This document shows, one piece after another, positions 28,201-64,000 of a DNA stretch of 64,000 nt. A program made the translations under genes and the position numbers. A model generated the notes under the pieces. The model was not told the DNA's origin, did not search any database, and worked only from the letters and a program-made list of their open reading frames with translations. Every line of letters starts with the position of its first letter. The first letter of the stretch is position 1. The stretch comes from Klebsormidium nitens (Eukaryota; Plantae; Klebsormidiophyceae). Location of the stretch: contig DF237202.1 of the NCBI GenBank assembly GCA_000708835.1, positions 1-64,000 on the forward strand. The letters run 5' to 3'.

Positions 28201-31200
28201 TGAAGCCGCATACCGCTTCCCTAACTGCAAAAATTTACTTTCAGATTACTTCAGCTTGAGACCAATTCTCGCTGCTCATTTCCAGCCCCAGCCCATAGAA
28301 ACATAGAAACCTCAGGCCGTCAAATTGCTTTAAACATCAGTCAAAGCTTTTTCTTTCCAGTAAGAAGCCCTGCAATCTCAAATCGCTAAACCGTCGAACC
28401 TCTTGCGCAGACTGGTGGCGCCGTGTGCTTCGACAAGAACACGAGCGGTTACTTCAAGGGCGGCAGTTTCAAGGGTGACGTGGCGTCAACAAACGGTGGT
28501 GACGTGTACGTCGAGACGGGTGCTTGCGTCACCTTCACGAACGTCAACTTCCGGATGTCGTTTGCCGACAAGGGCGGCGCCGTTTACGCCAACACGAACG
28601 GTTCCGTTGACGTCGGGTACAGCTTCTTCGACCGGAACGCCGCAACGGTGAGATTTCTCGCCTTTATAAGCGCTGGTTTTCATGCAAGCAAGTGATGTGA
28701 TCACCTTTAACTAGTTATAAGTCGTATGATGCGATGCAGGAAAAGAGTGAAAGAAACCAGACCTAGTCATACTCAAGAGGTAGAGTGAGGCGTGAGTCGC
28801 ATACAGCGATGTGATTGTAAGATGCAAAGAGCGTTGAGGAGTGACGAGTGTTCAAAGTGAAGAGTTTTGCCTGCAATAATCAGTGCTAGAAGAACGACAG
28901 GCCAGAGAGATACTTTGGACACAGAATCCGACAGAAAAGATATCCGGAGACGAATTTTCTGCTTTGAAATCCCAATGGGCGCTGATAAGTGTCGCTTTTT
29001 CAACAGACCGCGGGTGGCGCGATCGCGGCAGCAACCGGCTCCACTGTCAGCGTCGAGTTCACCCAGTTCGCTGGCAACACAGCCCCGGTAAGTTCCCCCG
29101 GTTGCAGTAGTCGGAAACTTTGAGCCTGCTCCCGTCTTTAGAAGTAAGAGTTGTTTCTCCCGGCCAACGGATCGAACAGGTGCAGCAGCAGCATTGCGGC
29201 TGCTTTGCAAACATTCGCAGCTTTCGCGAGTCCGAGTGAGCAATCAACACAACCAGTGACAATGCGTTTGTCGTCGGAGGATTCTCAAGGGGTCTTCGTT
29301 TGCGCCTTGAAATAAATGCCTGTCACTGTAAGTATTCGGAGGCTGCTTTGAATTCTAGGAGTCGTTTGTACCGTCGGCTGCGTCTGCAATGAAGCTTCTA
29401 AGATGAGACTTCCCTTCGGATTGCGGCCTTGGAAGTGTTCCTTTTAAACATTTTACTAACCCCCAGATATGTGCGAACGCAGACCGGAGCCGACGCGGCT
29501 CTCGAGGCGGGTGTCACAAATTCGTTCTACAAGGATACGTTCACCGCTGCCGGCACAGTTGTGAACGGCAACGTTTGCGATACGCCAACTGGTGAGCTTC
29601 AGGACTCCTTCGATGAGTCCCTTCGGTTCTTCTCCTCTCAGGACTGACCAAAAACCAACAGCTGTCGAAACAGAGTTTCTACATTTAACCACGATTGAAC
29701 ATCTCGCTTGTCGGTATTGCATGTCTGACGTTTCCACCTCTCGTTTCAGGCCACTCAATGAAAGAAGTTACAGATCAGATTGCTGAAGAAACTCCTTCAG
29801 ACATAGCGAGTCCTCTACTCTTCAAAGTCCAAGTCCTCGACCTCTCGATGAAAGACCTCATGAACTCATGAACCATCACTGAACCTCGTTCTTTCCGCCC
29901 TCCTGCACCACTTTCTCTCCGAAGCCCAAGTCCCTGACTTGGCGAACGAAGACATCATAAGTCCGCGGACCCCTTACTAACCTCTTCCTTAATGTTCCCC
30001 TGCAGCCACGTGCCGGTACCTCGCCCCGGTCTGTACCTGGATCCCCAACGACTGCAACATGCCCTTGACCCCGTTCCCGGTTCCCCAGCCGTCTCCTTCC
30101 CCCGCCTCTTCCCCGGTTCCTTCTCCGTCTCCCGCCGCCCCGTCGCCGCAACCGTCCAACTCTCCGGCAGTCCCCTCTCCCTCCCCCTCCCCCCGGTCAT
30201 CGCCCATGACGTCACCTTCCGGCTCGCCCCTGGCGTCACCTCTTCCGTCAGCTTCTAGCTCCCCCCGGGCGTCTCCTGTTGCTTCCCCGGTCGCTTCACC
30301 GATCCCGTCACCGGTTGCTTCACCGTCCAGCTCCCCCAGGGCGTCACCAATTGCGTCACCGGTAGCGTCACCCCTTCCGTCACCTTCTAGCTCGCCCCGG
30401 GCGTCTCCCGTAGCTTCACCGATCCCGTCACCGATCCCGTCACCTTCCAGCTCCCCCCGGGCGTCTCCCGTAGCGTCACCGATCCCGTCGCCGCTTCCGT
30501 CACCGGTCGCTTCACCGGTTCCGTCACCTTCTAGCTCCCCCCGGGCGTCTCCCGTTGCATCACCAATCCCGTCACCGGTCGCTTCTCCGGTTGCGTCACC
30601 AACTGCGTCCCCTTCCAGCTCCCCCCGGGCGTCTCCCGTCCCGTCACCAATCCCGTCTCCGTCAGCTTCGCCTAGACCTTCCCCTGTCGCGTCGCCGAGC
30701 GCGTCGCCGGCCGCGTCGCCGGCTGCGCCATCTCAGTCACCAGTGGCGTCACCGCTCCCGTCACCTTCCCGCTCCCCGGTCGCTTCTCCTGGGCCCTCGA
30801 GCTCCCCCCGAGCGTCACCAATTGCGTCACCGATTGCCTCACCAATCCCGTCACCTCTGCCGTCCCCCTCCGCCTCTCCCCTCCCCTCGGCGCTGCCCTC
30901 CCCCTCGAGCTCGCCCGTGACGTCACCCCTGCCGTCAGCGAGCCCCTCCTCGCGCCCCTCCCCCTCGCTGATGACGTCACCGGTTCCATCTGCTTCCGCC
31001 TCTCCCGCCCCCGTCCCCAGCCCATCTGCATCGCCAAAGGCGCCGGTTTCGTCTACCGGCCCCCCGGCCGTCATCCAGGAAATAACCCCGACGCCAACCA
31101 CGACACTAACCCCGACTAACCCCCCGGTTACCGCTGCCCCGGTCACTCTTCCTCCGGTCACGGCTGCCCCGGTCACTCTTCCTCCCGTCACCAAGCCCCC

Positions 31201-33895
31201 CAAAACGCCGTCCCCTACCGTGCAAATCCAGGGCGTTCCCACCACTTCACCCCCCACAACTTCCGCGCCTTCGACATCGCCCCCAACCGAAATCCCTTGC
31301 GATACCCCGGCAGCTGCTCCGGTTGCTCAGCCAACGCCCGCCCCCTCCGCATCGCCTATCCCCTCTCCATCACCTATCCCCTCAGCCTCGCCGTCGCCCG
31401 TCCCGTCGGCGTCCCCATCGGCAATGCCTTCGTCATCGCCTATGCCCTCTCCCTCCGCATCGCCTATCCCCTCTCCTTCAGCATCTCCTCTCCCATCTCC
31501 GTCCGCATCTGCTCTCCCCTCACCATCACCTATGCCCTCCCCTTCCTTATCTCCTGTCCCATCTCCTTCCGCCCAACCATCCCCGTCCCCTCTCCCCAGC
31601 CAATCGCCAATTCCCTCCCCCTCTGCCATTCCCTCCCCATCTCCCTCCCCCCTGCCATCGCCTATCCCCTCCCCATCACCTATCCACAAGCCCGTCCCCA
31701 CTTCCGGTCCCGGGGGAACCCCCCAAGGCGGCCCTGTCGACGAGCCTACCCCCGCCCCGACTACCCCCGGGGGGATCCCCCAAGCTACCCCCGCTCCTGT
31801 TCCGTCCGCGCCCGTTCCGTGCGAAAGCGGAAGCGGAACGTCTGTGAAGGGCGACCCCCATCTGGTCGGGAAGCACGGCGAGCGGTTTGATTTCATGGGC
31901 GAAGCGGGCAGGGACTACTGCCTGGTCGCCGACAAGAGGGTGCACGCCAACATGCACGTGTTCGCCGGGCGGAGGGAAGGAACCACCGTAAGTCGTCGCA
32001 ATCCCGAGCTCGTTCCGCTCCTTTGCTGTCTGCGAAGTGTGATTGAAGTCTTAGCTTGTTCGTGACTTTGAGCTTTCTGCAAGCTCAGTCGAACCAAGGT
32101 TTTGGTTGGCAAGATAACTTCTGGATCCCATCGAATTTGCAGTTACCGGTGCCGTCGCAGATCAAGTGGATTAAAGTGGTGTGGACAGAGAATCTTTGCT
32201 GAACATGTATATCCTGACTACTTAGAATGCGCGCAGCTTTACACGCAGCCTTATTTGGACCTCAGCTATGATACACCATACGCTTACGAGGAGAACCTAG
32301 GAAAGTGAAGTTCGAGGCTATATAGACCCTAGATTCAAAAGAAGGAAAAGAAGAGCGGAAAGAAGATTATAACGAGAATTGGGCTGACTGCCAAATTCTT
32401 CCCCTGCAGTACATCTCGGAGATCGGTCTGCTGGTGGACTCCGACGAGATCTTCGTTTCCGCCAAGTCCGCGGATTCCGCCGCCTGGAAGGACTTCCACG
32501 GAATGGTCCTCGTGAACGGGATCGAGCTCCCGCTCTCTGACGTCAGCATGGCGCTCGCGAACGGGCTCACGATCACACGTGGCAAGACGAGCGTCAGGGT
32601 TGCTAAGGCGGGCGTCCTTGACGTCACCATGGATATTGCGCGCGCGTCTTTCTGGGAGAACGGCCCAGGCCAGAACTTCGTAAGTTATACTTTTTTTTCC
32701 AGTCTTCCTTCCGCTTAGTATCGGAAGTCTCTGACCCGATCACCGCACCCGATCCACAAAAACCACCGTGAGAAGAAGACACGACTTTCTTGCGCACAGC
32801 GCTTATGCCCTTGGCAAGTCCGCTTAATCCAAATTCAGCAAACTATGGGCTAAGGTCAGAATTTGGGGCTTCACTGTAGTGGATGTAAAGGGGAGGCGTA
32901 CTCAGAACAGGTTTGGGATGCTACAACACTTCCTCAAGACCTCAAATACCCACCATGTCGTTTGCTTAACGAAGTAATCTCGTTAGGGAGAAAGTTTAGT
33001 AACTCCTGACTCGCAAAAGCGGATAAAAGCAAAGATTCGTAAACCCCAGTTTGCTCCAAAACTCGACTCTTAACCACTTTCTGGGCGCCACTTGCAGATC
33101 AACTTTAAGGTGACGTCACTCAACGTCAGCCCCGCCGTCCACGGAGTGCTCGGGCAGACGTACCGGGAGGATGAGCGGACGTACAAGAAGCTCGCCCACG
33201 GAACGGAATTCAAGAAGCTGCGGAACAACGGAATGCCGTATTACGTCGATGGCGAGGAGTCGGACTACCTGTCATCAGGTGAGGGTGTGAATAGGATCAC
33301 GAGGAGCCCGTTTTGCCTGACAGGAATGGCTTAGTTGGAGGACCGTTGGGGGAAGTTCCCATAACGAGAACGTAATTTTGGAAAGATTGCTCAATAAAGT
33401 GGGTCTCGGACCATTACTAAATGTGAGTACTTGATTACTGCTAAGAGTTTCTGGATTCTAATAGCTTCGCTGCTCATTGCTGTTGACCTCGAAAAACATA
33501 TACTCAAGATTCTTTGCCATTCAGCGGACTTTCTGAAGCCTGTCTATTTTAATGTCACAACCTGGCTGGACTTGCGCCAAGTATCTTCTCTAGCTCGTTC
33601 GTGAATAGAAACGAAACCGCCGCACACAGCCAACCGGTCCTCTTGCCGTTGGTTGTGCCTGACTGAGGGATCTCACGGCAAACTCAAAATGTTTGAGTAA
33701 GCAAAAGCCGGCATTCTTTGTTGTCCCCCGGTCGCTTACCTTCTCCTCTTTTCCGCCCCAGGTATCATGGCTGCGGACTGCAATTTCGCCCGGTTCGCTC
33801 CTCAGGGGCCCAAGGCTTCGACCGGGGCAAGAAAGATGCTGTCATCCGAGGAGGCGACACTCACGGTTAAGGGCTCTGGTTTCGGTGACTTCTAG
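25222..33895 (+). CDS. Large secreted hydroxyproline-rich glycoprotein-like protein: signal peptide, Ala/Pro arm, GGA-repeat beta-helix-like domain, SP-rich rod, root-cap-type C-terminal domain
   Basis: 11 exons: 25222-25285, 25879-25941, 26530-27119, 27627-27917, 28411-28647, 29007-29087, 29483-29591, 30006-31987, 32410-32679, 33098-33278, 33762-33895 (TAG), phases consistent. Signal peptide MARNTYTFLCVLVMAAALTSS; repeats GGAVW, GGAVC, GGAVY, GGAIA with FxxN; C-terminal GDPHLVGKHGERFDFMG..DYCLVAD..VHANMH, HGVLGQTY and DCNFARF match the plant root-cap/LEA-related domain as recalled. Confidence 0.88.
26572..26750 (+). repeat. Coding tandem repeats (PTDAPA and 30-nt SAPGPSDEPT units)
   Basis: gcacctggaccgtccgatga occurs four times at 30-nt spacing (26637-26746). 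Confidence 0.9.
30080..31690 (+). repeat. Coding Ser/Pro-rich repeats (SPVASPIPSP, SPSSSPRASP, SPSASP)
   Basis: Visible directly in the 668-aa ORF; interrupted by a Thr/Pro linker at ~31070-31320. Confidence 0.9.
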
Positions 33896-59028: not shown

Positions 59029-60511
59029 CGACAGTTATTCATGATCTGTTCATCTATAGTTAAATTGAATATATTTTGGTGCTTCCTTTAGGCAAGCTCG
59101 TGAGGCCTTGATACCTTAGCATCAATATTGGGGTCAACTACATGGCCGCGCGCGCGGCGGCGACGTCAACAATATAGCTAAGGCGCTATAGACAGTACGT
59201 GAGAATGGCTGATTCGCGCACTAAAGTAACGGTGGCAGAAGTATCGATTTTCTGATCAGGAGGGGACGTGGGGCGCAGCCGAGACAATGGGCTCGCGGGC
59301 GCGATCAGCCGGTTATACTCAGATCGGAACAGCTTGAACTTATAGAAGCCGAGCAACGTATTCACTCACTCACGAACTCAGTCACACTCAAGAACATTTG
59401 CGCCTACATTGTACACACTGCAAAACTCAGCGTCTTCACAAGTTGGGCTTTGCTTTGCAGAGTGTGGAAAAGATTATGCACCACGACGGTACCCCCCGCA
59501 CCACCCGGCAGTCCACTGGCCGGGCGCGCAAAACATACTGAACGATCTCGATATACCATGCATGTCTCTGGTAAAATATAGGCCGGCATGCGATGCGTGC
59601 ATACTAAATAATCTTGCCGAGTCTTCGGTAAAAGAAAGAGGATATTCTGGACGGTGACGCTGACGTATTCAAGTCGGATCCACCGTGCAATACTCAACGA
59701 CCGTCGAAGGGTTCCCGAGAGCTGCGGCGCTATGAACGGATCCCAGCTGTCCACATATGTAAATGCTGAGCGCTAGATCGGGATTCTGTGTTAGTAAAGC
59801 AGTGGCGATAAGGTTCGCTGTTTCGATGATGCAACGAAAATGCTGCTCGTCAGTGATCGACGGCTCTGTCGACTGGCCCGGACTTCGAGGCAGCACTTCT
59901 GCTTCACAAAAAATCGGAACAATCCGAGGACTCGGTTGAAGATTGGACTCAGCCGATATACCGTCCCTTGCTGCTATGATGTATCTGTGGCAAAAAGCGA
60001 ACGGGCTTGGGGAAGGAGTCTCGGTTGAGCTCAGGCGAATTGTTGAGTCGCTCAACAATGAAGGCGGCGCACACGGTACCAATACTTTCAGCTTACTTGA
60101 GAACGAATGATACCGCTTCTCTTTGCGCACTTCGCGCAGGAAATTGTTGAAAATATTCGACACAAAAACTGTCGGTAGCTAGGACGGAGTCATGGCCCTG
60201 ATCCAGTGATCCAAAAGTTATCTATGCTTACTTGCTCTCAGTAGACTTCAAATTCGTAAACGGGTATTTATGAATACTTACAACAAATGCTTTGGGCCTA
60301 ATCGAGGCCCTTAATGCTGTACAGCTTGATGCGGTGAGCCCAATCAAGCAAACCGCTTCCCACTATTTAATCCACTTCGCTGATTTCGTTTCCCGGGTGC
60401 CAGTGCCGCGGTGTTTCGTGTTGTAGGCAGACCCCGGACACCGGTGCCTTGCCCAAACGGCCCCAATCTCACTTTTTTACGCTGCGAGCCACACACTATA
60501 TATCCTATCAC

Positions 60512-63277
60512 TTACTCCAAAACAAGAGCCGCTCTCATCTTCTTCGCCTTGTTCCAGCACTCCCCCAGAAACCGCCCATAAACATCCAAAACCCCAAACG
60601 TCGCCTCCGCGAACTGCGGCTCGAGCCGCGGGTTCGCTTCGACGAACTTGTCGCGCAGCTCCGCGCTCTCGGCCGCGTGCGTGACGTCAAGGACCACGTG
60701 GTGGTGCAGAAACGTCAGCTGGGGCAAAAAGGCGTCGCCCAAAAGCGCGCGCACGCGCGCGATCATGGGCGCGCCCAGGACGAGCGACAGCTGCTCGATC
60801 GCGCTCTGGATGGCGACCTGGGCGTACGGCTGCTTGGACGCGATGTACCTGTAGAGTGGACGTCCGAAAATGATATCAGACTGACCGGCTCAGGCTTTGT
60901 AAAGGTGAATCTGAAGGGAAACGTCTGCGAATGGCAAGGCCCTGGGCGTACGGGTGCTGAGACGCGATGTACCTGCAGAATAAACGTCCGAGTATGCTTT
61001 GGAACTTGATGGGCGCGCTTACAATCTATCAATTATATGAAGACGTACTAACGAACATCTCCAAAATGGCAACTTAGGCGCGTGTAACTGCTTAAATCCT
61101 GATCACCTGGCTAGCAAGCGTCCAAAGAACGAACGGAGAACACGCCCAACTGTGTCGACCATTTAATGGAGTCAGATTGAAGTCGATACCGGAAGCAGCA
61201 TGACGGGAACTCGTCAGCGTTCACTACTTATCAGTGCAGCCAGACTAATAGAATACCGAGTCTCCGTGGCAGGAGATGGTACGATGGGACGGTCTCGTTT
61301 TCAGCACGCAAAACGAGTCTTTGTTTTTCCGCTTGGCACCTTCTGAGGGCAACACCAGTGCCAGTGCTCCAAAGACCGCTCTGGCCGTGAGACGTTTTGT
61401 AACGTGGGCTCTGCTCAAAGTGGCAATCTAGCGCAGAGCGGCGATCTTGACACTCAGGGCTCTTCCTCACGGCGCGTCTTTCCTCCTACCCAAAACCTTC
61501 CAATCTCGTGCGCAAGTCTTCCTATGCAAACAGAATAAGCAGTTCCTAGAGGAATGGGCAGTCTCCGTCCCGTAGCTCACCTGTCATGCAGCTCGTCATA
61601 GTCGTGCACGCTCTGGAAGTACGGTGACGTCAGGAGCGCGTCAGCGGACATGGGGCTGCCGGGGTGCTTCGCGTTCCAGGAGGCTGACAGCTTCGTGACG
61701 TCATTCCGGAACCACCGGTCGTGGCCGGCTTCTTCGAGAGCACCCTCAACCAGGCTGCGGGTGCGAAACGAAGATATACTATTGACAGATTTTATCGAGA
61801 TAGCAAAAATGCGAAATACATGTTTACGTTCCGAGTGGTCATTGATCGGCCAGCTTGGCGGGTGGGAATTGGGTCGAGGCAGTAAAGAAGTAGCGAAACG
61901 GAGATGCGTTGAACGATGCAAAGTCAGGCTGGGGCGGAGTGAATGCCAATCTTACTTTAACGCCTCAAAATACATTCAAGGTAACAGGTTCTGGAAACAA
62001 GTCGTCAGGAAAACAGACTTCAAGATGACCATGCGGTGAGCTTGATGATAACCGAATGGAAAGGATTATGGAAATAATCGCTATAAAGTATATGCGATGA
62101 TACTCGGGAGCCTATCTAGAAATTGGCAAACAAAGGCGACCTGTATGACAGGGATCAGTAGAGGAAAGGTAGACTCCGGTTTGCCGTCTAGAACCTCACT
62201 CTGGTCGTTGTGGGCAAGCGGAAAAACTTCGTCAAGGATCCATGAAAGGGCAGAGACCTTGTAATTCGCGGTTGAGGTGTAAGCCAGAGCTTGACAAAAT
62301 TCTGACGGCTGTCAGATTGCAGTCGCTTGCGCCAGCTTAAGTGCCAAGGGTGCCAATATTATCGGAAAGAAGTCATAGGACTTTTGGGCCCCTTAACCAA
62401 GGACGGTTTTGGGCAGGTTAAAATTCTGGTTATCTGTCCAGTAACCAGACTTGGACGTTAAACAGCTTTGGAGCAAGGTTGAAACCCGGTTAAGCTGTCC
62501 AATAACTCAAGCCTCAAGTTGGTTACCAATCTGGTTAGCAGCCAAAACTTCCTGTGAGTGAAGCCACCTTCTCCTATGTCCTCAGGTTCATCAAATTTGG
62601 GCAGAGTGAGAAGACGACGGCTTACCTGTTTCCCAGTTCCTGCAGCATCTCGACGTCACTGCCTGCGTTAGCAAGCGCCAGGCACTCCTGCCCCGCTCGC
62701 CGAATCCACATCTCGACCTGCGCAGAAACCACCTCTGGATTCCAGCCCAGGCCAAAGTCGAAAAGACTTGGCAGATCCGGCCCTAGGCTGTGTACGTGTA
62801 AGCTCACTCACAAGTCATGAGCCTTTCAAAAGCTCGTGTAATCATTGAAGTCTGTCTGATTCTGAGAGCGAAGCAGACCACAACAGGGATCCCTCCCTAC
62901 CTGCTGCACTGGCAGCCCTTAATGGATACAAAGACAGGTCATGATTTGCCTCCCTCCCCATCTCATCTGCTGTAGGAGCAGTCTTTTGGCTGGTCACTTC
63001 AGGTTCCTGCTGGATAGTCTGGAAGTCAGAAAGAAGGTCGAAGGGACGAATGAGTATGCCAAAATATTGTGTGGCTCACCTTTTCAGTCATGCCAACTCC
63101 TTGGGAGCAGAACACAAGGAAGAACAAGTGCAGTAAGTCGGTGTCATCGCACGCCGCCAGCTCCTGAAGCTCCGGAACCGCCGCCAGGGCCTGGGGCGCG
63201 GCCCTGTAGTCCTGTTGGGATGCTGACGTCAGCGCGGCGGCGACGTCTGTGGTTAGGGCAGCGGTGGCCACATTGCG
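60512..63277 (-). CDS. Heme-oxygenase-like diiron oxidase (HDO / iron-containing redox enzyme), bacterial type; 5' end beyond the window
   Basis: Exons 63277-63080, 62717-62626, 61754-61581 and 60848-60512 (TAA), phases consistent. Protein: FCSQGVGMTEKVEMWIRRAGQEC...LVEGALEEAGHDRWFRND...YAQVAIQSAIEQLS...LTFLHHHVVLDVTH...LDVYGRFLGECW, carrying ExxH, E and HxxxDxxH ligand sets. A GTAAGT donor at 63998 indicates a further upstream exon. Confidence 0.8.
60940..60985 (-). repeat. Upstream intronic copy of the HDO last-exon acceptor
   Basis: ctgcag|GTACATCGCGTCTCAGCACCCGTACGCCCAG (start 60972) compared with the live ctacag|GTACATCGCGTCCAAGCAGCCGTACGCCCAG (start 60848). Confidence 0.85.
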
Positions 63278-64000
63278 CTGCAAAATATTGTGGATGGGCG
63301 TAAACGGAGGAAGAAATGTTCTCAAAATGCGTTTGTGGAGTCAGCGTCAGTTGAGTGTGGATCTTTGCAGAAAGTGCGCACAGAGAAAATGTGATGCTTT
63401 TGGCCCTCTTGATTGCGAGAACAAGCTAGCTGGAATTGCTTTGCTGTAAGGCAGCTGGCGGCAGCAGCCTAGCAATCAGTCCGGAACTTTGATATTGTCA
63501 GCTGCTACTATGGCATCGATTCTGAAATCTGACTCACTGCTAGGCGCATCAGCCCCTACAGAATCATGCTTCAGGTCCAGATTGGAACATGTTTACGAAA
63601 CCTGCTTCCAGACACCAAACCACTGAAAATCTCATTGACAAAAAACTCCTGACTGCCCAGAAATTACCCACAGCTTTCTGAAACTACTCAACCAGATCTG
63701 ACTCTCAACAAAGTTGAGAAGCCTCAACCCACCCATGAGCTCGCACACCCTCTTGGAATACAAGCTTTGGGTTCATGGATAATTCAGCATAATAGAATTC
63801 TGTGGCTACCAAAATAACCTTTTCATTGGTGGGCAATCAGCTGGGGCCTCAAATCACATTTCGTGCGACAGTCTGATGCAGGCATCGGGGGGAGCAAGCA
63901 AAGAATGTCAAGCTTACCATATGGCACCCATTTATTGGAGTCTTATCCAAATCAACAACAGGATTCAGAAGCTTGGTTGTCAAACAGGTTCGACTTACCT

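Follow-up and report, generated by a model that had tools for sequence, protein, structure and literature searches.

Does a split reading frame close to the end of a 64-kb stretch of algal DNA belong to the alga at all and, if so, which enzyme does it encode and where did it come from? The stretch, called the window here, is the first 64 kb of Klebsormidium nitens scaffold DF237202.1 (121.5 kb). The gene in question is KFL_002530080, which encodes a "hypothetical protein" of 306 amino acids (GAQ85763.1) and has its last four coding exons at 60512-63277 on the minus strand. It is a genuine, expressed nuclear gene of K. nitens. Judging from the modelled fold and metal site, its product is very probably a working dimetal oxidase with a heme-oxygenase-like fold (HDO), and the gene was probably acquired from bacteria.

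KFL_002530080 is composed of six exons separated by GT..AG introns, of which exons 3-6 lie fully inside the window (Table 1). The coding part of these four exons runs from 60512, the first base listed for the stop codon, to 63277, the exon's first base after a ttttgcag acceptor. A query of 1.84 billion protein representatives using exon 6 retrieved GAQ85763.1 (as P0001), which agrees with the window exon translations at 100% identity and served as the whole-protein reference. The motifs quoted in the original prediction, which was made from the window sequence alone, are present in these minus-strand translations, at residues 144-148 (EEAGH), 211-216 (AIEQLS) and 243-252 (HHHVVLDVTH), together with GVGMTEKVEMWIRRAGQEC, YAQVAIQSAIEQLS and LDVYGRFLGEC. 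Splicing is documented by a 1202-nucleotide (nt) RNA-derived contig from run X6, which joins 60848 to 61581, 61754 to 62626 and 62717 to 63080, in each case across a GT..AG intron. The interruptions proposed earlier are thus real spliceosomal introns that are removed in this contig, and the reading of the junction MTEK|VEMWIRRAG (given as 'MTE.VE.WIRRAG') was right. Because the X6 contig, which carries the same species label, shows about 4% difference from the window sequence, it appears to come from a related strain. It departs from the window sequence at 63279 and continues into sequence homologous to annotated exon 2, and the exon 2/3 junction is consistent with it once strain differences are allowed for (4 of 30 bases differ upstream). 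An alternative gene model, with an extra exon at 63018-62901 and an exon 4 starting from 62782, was ruled out, since both segments are intron in the X6 contig.

Bacterial contamination or mis-assembly of the K. nitens genome would account for the fact that, beyond algal contigs, every detectable relative of the protein is bacterial. This explanation is effectively refuted, and its probability is negligible, given the introns and their splicing, the surrounding scaffold and orthologous contigs of independent origin. The gene has four GT..AG introns that are removed in the RNA-derived contig, and it lies inside a 121-kb scaffold, flanked by intron-bearing eukaryotic genes, the adjoining one being an amidase gene. 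Its exons (62-64% GC, with 81% GC at third codon positions) and introns (46-51% GC) differ in composition in a host-typical way, and intron-bearing orthologues were recovered in four independent runs.

What the gene encodes was addressed by family profiles and structure prediction. The whole protein matches PF14518 (Haem_oxygenas_2, iron-containing redox enzyme) over residues 129-282 with 34.1 bits, above the gathering threshold of 28.9 (E 3e-8), and exon 6 alone scores 23.6 bits (E 5e-5); a PF14518 match is also precomputed for the deposited record. The Atlas feature search returned families of the heme oxygenase (HO) clan exclusively. The AlphaFold model, built with 60 relatives, has a mean pLDDT of 84.6 (above 90 for residues 70-306), is all helical and forms the seven-helix HO-like bundle. 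Foldseek places 3DDE first (TM 0.79 by target, probability 1.00), ahead of CADD, UndA, HrmI, PolF, AetD and BesC, with TenA and PqqC structures ranking under the dimetal enzymes. The HDO superfamily is defined by the seven-helix HO-like fold and a ligand set of three histidines and three carboxylates (3H/3C), according to a 2026 review (PMC13108848). The predicted ligand set of the algal protein is complete, core helix 1 contributing E145-x-x-H148, core helix 2 E213 and core helix 3 H245-x3-D249-x2-H252. Each of the six residues is at least 97% conserved among 59 relatives, and both algal orthologues retain all of them. A phmmer search of the whole protein against PDB sequences gave no match, and a family profile was needed to reach 3DDE (E 2e-5) and CADD (E 2e-3) by sequence. 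The profile alignment places E142, H174, D178 and H181 of CADD on E213, H245, D249 and H252, and the HEEAGH segment of 3DDE on E144-E145-A-G-H148. Assignment to the HDO superfamily, as first suggested from the motifs, is therefore upheld by the family match, the fold and the ligands aligned to CADD, structure prediction having recovered an HO-like helical fold rather than one that lacks a dimetal ligand set.

The relatives of this protein are bacterial. Among the 1.84 billion representatives, 141 were found at E<=1e-3, numerous metagenomic proteins among them. A word search gave E values of 1e-29 to 1e-35 for P0145-P0148. A search of about 185,000 species-representative genomes with a 10-sequence alignment as query detected relatives at 30-40% identity in 128 of them, all bacterial, which bears out the suspected resemblance to an uncharacterised bacterial family. 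From these genomes, 80 loci were kept (tblastn E 1e-32 to 1e-40), to which the locus, phylum and context figures refer. Myxococcota are dominant (Myxococcus, Corallococcus, Archangium, Nannocystis, Polyangia), followed by Pseudomonadota (including Legionella), Actinomycetota, Acidobacteriota and Cyanobacteriota (L022, L068 and L069). In all, the bacterial family spans at least seven phyla, and its members are mostly soil taxa. Searches of 1.84 and 5.8 billion proteins (NCBI nr, UniRef and EukProt included) turned up no named eukaryotic relative besides K. nitens. The original prediction had not recognised the family from land plants, and none was found there among the 1.84 billion representatives or by word search. 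A broad distribution among eukaryotes, which would have told against a bacterial source, was likewise not seen: K. nitens is the only eukaryote named, and Klebsormidium-like contigs complete the list. As a side observation, L031 (BNCN01000016.1, labelled Comamonas sp. KCTC 72670) carries an HDO that falls within Myxococcus in the tree and is near-identical to the one in Myxococcus sp. Y35, so that mislabelling or contamination of the record is possible.

The only other eukaryotic relatives, which first surfaced as two short matches, are intron-bearing orthologues on Klebsormidium-like contigs in four independent runs. Three of them (L005-L007, runs SRR14092358-60) share about 65% protein identity with the K. 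nitens gene, and the fourth (L008, run SRR23617307) shares 86-89% DNA identity. Exon boundaries in L005 and L008 fall at the same protein positions as in K. nitens, and L008 has an extra intron (L008:1478-1836), seen neither in K. nitens nor in L005, that splits the last exon just after ligand His252. With per-exon counts summed, the ratio of nonsynonymous to synonymous change (dN/dS) is 0.18 against L005, at a synonymous divergence (dS) of about 1.2, and 0.25 against L008. Because the orthologues share introns and ligands and dN/dS lies at 0.18-0.25, the gene is, on this comparative evidence, old in the algal lineage and under purifying selection.

The algal proteins nonetheless depart from their bacterial relatives. 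The alignment reveals an 8-residue insertion, ANAGSDVE, that the bacterial proteins do not have. E211, invariant in 59 of 59 aligned bacterial sequences, is Ala in K. nitens and in both algal orthologues, and G278, present in 97% of aligned bacterial sequences, is Thr in all three. The insertion, A211 and T278 are common to the orthologues where aligned, the orthologue alignments stopping short of the N-terminal extension. The departures at positions that are near-invariant in bacteria (G141, D194, Q209, A211, A253, S256 and T278) count against a working enzyme, and the loss of the invariant E211 among them could be taken as the mark of a pseudo-enzyme. The HO-like fold also hosts metal-free enzymes, and TenA and PqqC do occur lower in the Foldseek list, so that a metal-free or non-oxidative HO-fold protein (TenA/thiaminase-like, PqqC-like or regulatory) has to be considered as well. 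Both possibilities appear unlikely, however. Three algal sequences under purifying selection retain the whole dimetal ligand set of six residues, and the fold search puts 3DDE and the dimetal enzymes CADD and UndA highest. Furthermore, the whole protein has no match to PF03070 (TenA/THI-4/PqqC) at E<=0.01.

In phylogenetic trees, a single clade (100/100) unites the algal sequences; its stem measures 1.6 changes per site, and neither the quick nor the careful tree resolves a donor, both leaving the algae on a long stem. The direction of transfer is thus read from distribution, i.e., at least seven bacterial phyla versus one narrow algal lineage, and not from tree topology. Horizontal acquisition followed by intron gain, as the original prediction had it, is the most economical reading: the bacterial distribution and the introns shared at a dS of about 1.2 speak for it, while the long stem, the unrooted tree and the missing donor leave it short of proof. 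Several further points weigh on the same side as the latter. The only supported neighbour of the algal clade, P0005 (95/87), is itself long-branched; its contig is operon-like and evidently prokaryotic. Absence from other eukaryotes depends on database coverage, and a weak Haem_oxygenas_2 (PF14518) match has been reported in the desert chlorophyte Chloroidium (PMC5509433). The Chloroidium match, together with the want of a root, would also suit an ancient eukaryotic or plastid-lineage gene that descended vertically and was lost in nearly all other eukaryotes. Such descent could further explain why the algal clade attaches near the backbone and not deep within one bacterial phylum, and the family does have cyanobacterial members. 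Yet the algae do not group with these cyanobacterial sequences, the protein searches returned no second named eukaryote, and very many independent losses would be needed, which makes vertical descent improbable. Earlier work has repeatedly described the passage of bacterial genes into Klebsormidium, other charophytes and land plants (e.g., PMC5570899, PMC5028733), and given these earlier reports, the acquisition from bacteria favoured here is not exceptional as evidence of gene transfer.

Compared with the bacterial proteins, the algal protein has about 55 extra residues at its N-terminus, and residues 1-60 are predicted to be disordered in the AlphaFold model. The original prediction took an Ala-rich N-terminal segment as the possible end of an organelle transit peptide, and the extension may be such a peptide. 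It also pointed to further exons upstream; exon 2 was located on DF237202.1 and is homologous to the X6 contig, while exon 1 is taken from the annotation. The frame of annotated exon 2 is open for 135 codons upstream (L001:10240-10644, equivalent to 64403-63999 in window numbering, an L001 position being 74643 minus the window position). If translation began at the in-frame ATG at L001:10406, which lies within annotated intron 1, the protein would start MAAVRATTRLQ... The annotated exon 1 and start codon may therefore be wrong, and use of this ATG could lengthen the N-terminal extension by about 40 residues.

Table 1. Features of KFL_002530080 in window coordinates.
Feature	Position	Strand	Content and evidence
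3' untranslated region, minimum extent	60447..60511	minus	Unspliced, window-identical contig of run X1 spans 60447-60714
Exon 6 (last coding)	60512..60848	minus	Residues 196-306 and third base of R195; stop TAA 60512-60514; predicted ligands E213, H245, D249, H252; equals P0001 196-306 (100%); junction in X6
Intron 5	60849..61580	minus	GT..AG, 732 nt
Exon 5	61581..61754	minus	Residues 137 (last base) to 195 (first two bases); EEAGH; predicted ligands E145 and H148; junctions in X6
Intron 4	61755..62625	minus	GT..AG, 871 nt
Exon 4	62626..62717	minus	Residues 107-136 and two bases of S137; VEMWIRRAGQEC helix; ANAGSDVE insertion; junction in X6
Intron 3	62718..63079	minus	GT..AG, 362 nt
Exon 3	63080..63277	minus	Residues 41-106: end of N-terminal extension, then first HO-like helices, ending GVGMTEK
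Intron 2	63278..63998	minus	GT..AG, 721 nt; X6 contig leaves the window sequence at 63279
Annotated exon 2, last two bases	63999..64000	minus	Remainder (to 64076) past window edge on DF237202.1
Annotated exon 1	~64600-64642	minus	Past window edge; known from annotation alone

Some features of the introns and of the window at large can be mentioned beside the gene structure. Intron 5 contains a 56-nt direct repeat (60941-60996) that is 84% identical to the exon-6 acceptor region (60817-60872) at a spacing of 124 nt. It duplicates the acceptor and the first 32 nt of exon 6, and the copy retains a ctgcag acceptor. Use of this copied acceptor would, as read from the sequence, soon meet a stop, and the X6 transcript employs the true acceptor. 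In intron 4, contigs from X1 and X2 match 62391-62423 and 62534-62556, with 108 other letters between the two segments and unrelated sequence thereafter; these matches probably reflect a dispersed repeat and not a KFL_002530080 transcript. Elsewhere in the window, positions 30001-32000 form a strong composition anomaly, with a GC content of 0.68 and a GC skew of -0.41, against about 0.50 and about 0 in the rest.

The bacterial relatives form an unnamed clade of HDOs of about 245 amino acids from Myxococcota, Acidobacteriota, Actinomycetota, Cyanobacteria and Legionella, typified by the Myxococcus xanthus gene in L041 and by the fusions P0010 and P0040. Their genomic context was surveyed for 83 HDO open reading frames (ORFs) from the 80 loci. 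The HDO lies directly downstream of a protein with a weak PilZ match in 39 cases; it is fused to a GNAT of the FeeM/Acetyltransf_5 type in 8 and adjacent to one in 9, and the test used detected no partner for 24. A GNAT-fold partner is thus adjacent or fused in two thirds of the ORFs (56/83), and metagenomic fusions join the HDO to either partner type and in either order. When profiles of the partner types were compared with each other, no similarity emerged. The predicted fold of the PilZ-type partner (pLDDT 90) matches tandem-GNAT acyltransferases over its C-terminal 330 residues, namely VipF (2e-10), the clavulanate tandem GNAT (2WPW) and MshD. Given the FeeM-like partners and a PilZ-type partner that folds as a tandem GNAT, the bacterial HDO clade is as a rule coupled to a GNAT-fold acyltransferase, often with a PilZ domain. 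In M. xanthus (L041:3614-6642), the coding sequence of a 758-amino-acid PilZ protein ends on the first base of the HDO gene, and the locus also holds a flavin adenine dinucleotide (FAD) monooxygenase. In two other loci (L003:3122-8424 and L004:1202-6504), an aromatic ammonia-lyase comes first, followed by an AMP-ligase, the PilZ-tandem-GNAT and the HDO. Both an aromatic ammonia-lyase and an AMP-dependent ligase recur in L068 from the cyanobacterium Amazonocrinis nigriterrae, in which two tandem HDO copies (L068:5884-7588) are identical in protein. Altogether, this context suggests that the bacterial clade performs chemistry on an acylated amine or amino acid.

A comparable partner was sought next to the algal gene. 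Hidden Markov models (HMMs) of the partner types found nothing within 10 kb on either side, the rest of the genome not having been searched. The neighbouring gene KFL_002530090 (P0150, 349 amino acids, L001:5059-8614 on the minus strand of L001) and the HDO gene are divergently transcribed. Searches with this neighbour gave no Pfam match, no homologue by word search and no BLAST, HMM or hhalign similarity to either bacterial partner; a language-model comparison (Atlas feature) gives a weak hint to AstA/Acetyltransf_1. The neighbour was considered as a GNAT co-transferred with the HDO, and this idea gained no support from any of these searches other than that hint. KFL_002530090 is either an orphan or a poor gene model.

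These findings can be assembled into a model in which the gene passed from a soil bacterium to an ancestor of these algae, after which it would have gained introns, a host-like composition and the N-terminal extension of about 55 residues. The protein would bind two metal ions (Fe/Fe or Fe/Mn), activate O2 and oxidise a small molecule. In the bacterial source, its partner would have been either a PilZ and tandem-GNAT protein or a FeeM-like N-acyl amino acid synthase. Because the bacterial clade usually works with a GNAT-fold acyltransferase, the ancestral substrate was probably an acylated amine or amino acid, or a precursor of one, and the ancestral module could, for example, have oxidatively decarboxylated, desaturated or N-oxygenated an N-acylated amino acid. 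The algal enzyme probably acts alone and on a changed substrate, as suggested by the missing neighbouring partner and the replacement of E211 by Ala and of G278 by Thr. As a whole, this best explanation, i.e., a domesticated bacterial HDO that lost its ancestral partner and changed its substrate, is reasonably likely. It is tempered by the result of the partner search: with no algal partner found and 24 of the 83 bacterial ORFs also without one, the link from bacterial context to algal function is weak. That the algal substrate is itself an N-acyl or amino-acid-derived compound, by analogy with the bacterial modules, is a tentative suggestion. Slightly more doubtful still is the fuller proposal that these algae hold a working HDO captured from an undescribed GNAT and HDO module and re-tuned (E211A, G278T, the insertion, the N-terminal peptide) for a lineage-specific metabolite that it makes or destroys.

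A function other than small-molecule metabolism can also be envisaged. By analogy with DtpC of A. baumannii (PMC13232832), the protein could be a stress-protective HDO that limits oxidative damage on drying in a desiccation-tolerant alga. Soil, bark and rock are the habitat of Klebsormidium (PMC10849092), and the preponderance of soil taxa among the bacterial relatives would fit such a role. However, the ligand residues of DtpC (E143, H153 and H232) suggest a different spacing, and this alternative seems unlikely.

If the domestication model is correct, Klebsormidiophyceae have a working eukaryotic HDO, while HDO enzymology treats the superfamily as bacterial. An intron-bearing, expressed and selected HDO in a streptophyte alga near the stem of land plants would represent a bacterial oxidative enzyme domesticated by a terrestrial alga. 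The oxidations performed by HDOs are unusual and include alkene-forming decarboxylation, N-nitrosation, nitrile formation and C-C fragmentation. The algal HDO is a tractable target, with a soluble domain of 245 residues. A side product of the analysis is the definition of the uncharacterised GNAT-coupled bacterial HDO clade, M. xanthus included, which offers a testable start for chemistry. The superfamily review puts its members in bacterial species at more than 10,000 and mentions no eukaryote, alga or plant (PMC13108848), and no mention of the gene, protein or UniProt identifiers of KFL_002530080 was found in the papers searched. The gene is thus a new and, for its eukaryotic host, unusually placed case of a known superfamily.

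How closely it resembles the characterised systems differs from one to another. The best match by profile and by fold is 3DDE (Sden_3740 of Shewanella denitrificans), annotated as 'TENA/THI-4 protein, domain of unknown function with a heme oxygenase-like fold'. Its HxxHEEAGH and H-x3-D-x2-H segments are in common with the algal protein; identity is 14-15%, and 3DDE is bacterial and intronless, with no function to transfer. CADD (CT610) of Chlamydia trachomatis (1RCW, 8VA9) is an Fe/Mn HDO and a self-sacrificing p-aminobenzoate synthase with an HO-like bundle as in the alga. The spacing of its first-helix ligands, presumably E81...H88, would differ from the E-x2-H of the algal protein. Both profile (E 2e-3) and fold put CADD among the nearest solved relatives, so that a CADD-like activity of the algal protein might be imagined. 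This is very improbable, though, for the similarity is at the superfamily level only (11-12% identity), and the profile alignment spans residues 99-211 of CADD, leaving Tyr27 of the sacrificial pair Tyr27/Lys152 uncovered. The bacterial context of GNAT, AMP-ligase and ammonia-lyase points, moreover, to small-molecule chemistry. CADD does use a 3H/3C ligand set (PMC13108848). Among the fold matches, UndA of Pseudomonas (4WWJ, 6P5Q), a diiron fatty-acid decarboxylase that yields 1-alkenes, has the HDO fold with a TM of 0.64-0.66 by target, and has neither a sequence-level match nor a Pfam link to the algal protein. Its ligand pattern, E-x2-H, E and H-x3-D-x2-H, is like that of the alga. The central domain of SznF, together with BesC, HrmI/BelK and RohS (N-oxygenation, C-C fragmentation), belongs to the same Pfam family, PF14518, as the algal protein. 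The fold matches to HrmI and BesC are weaker (TM 0.45-0.6), and these enzymes act on free amino acids or guanidines in Streptomyces-type clusters, whereas the clade related to the algal protein is coupled to GNAT. With this bacterial clade the algae share 30-40% identity across the whole domain and the motifs GVxMTEPVExWIRRAG, HEAGH, PYxQVAIE.EIE.LS, LSFL.EHV.xDVGHT and ALDxYxxFLxDC. The algal proteins are set apart from it by their introns, their N-terminal extension, the ANAGSDVE insertion, A211 and T278.

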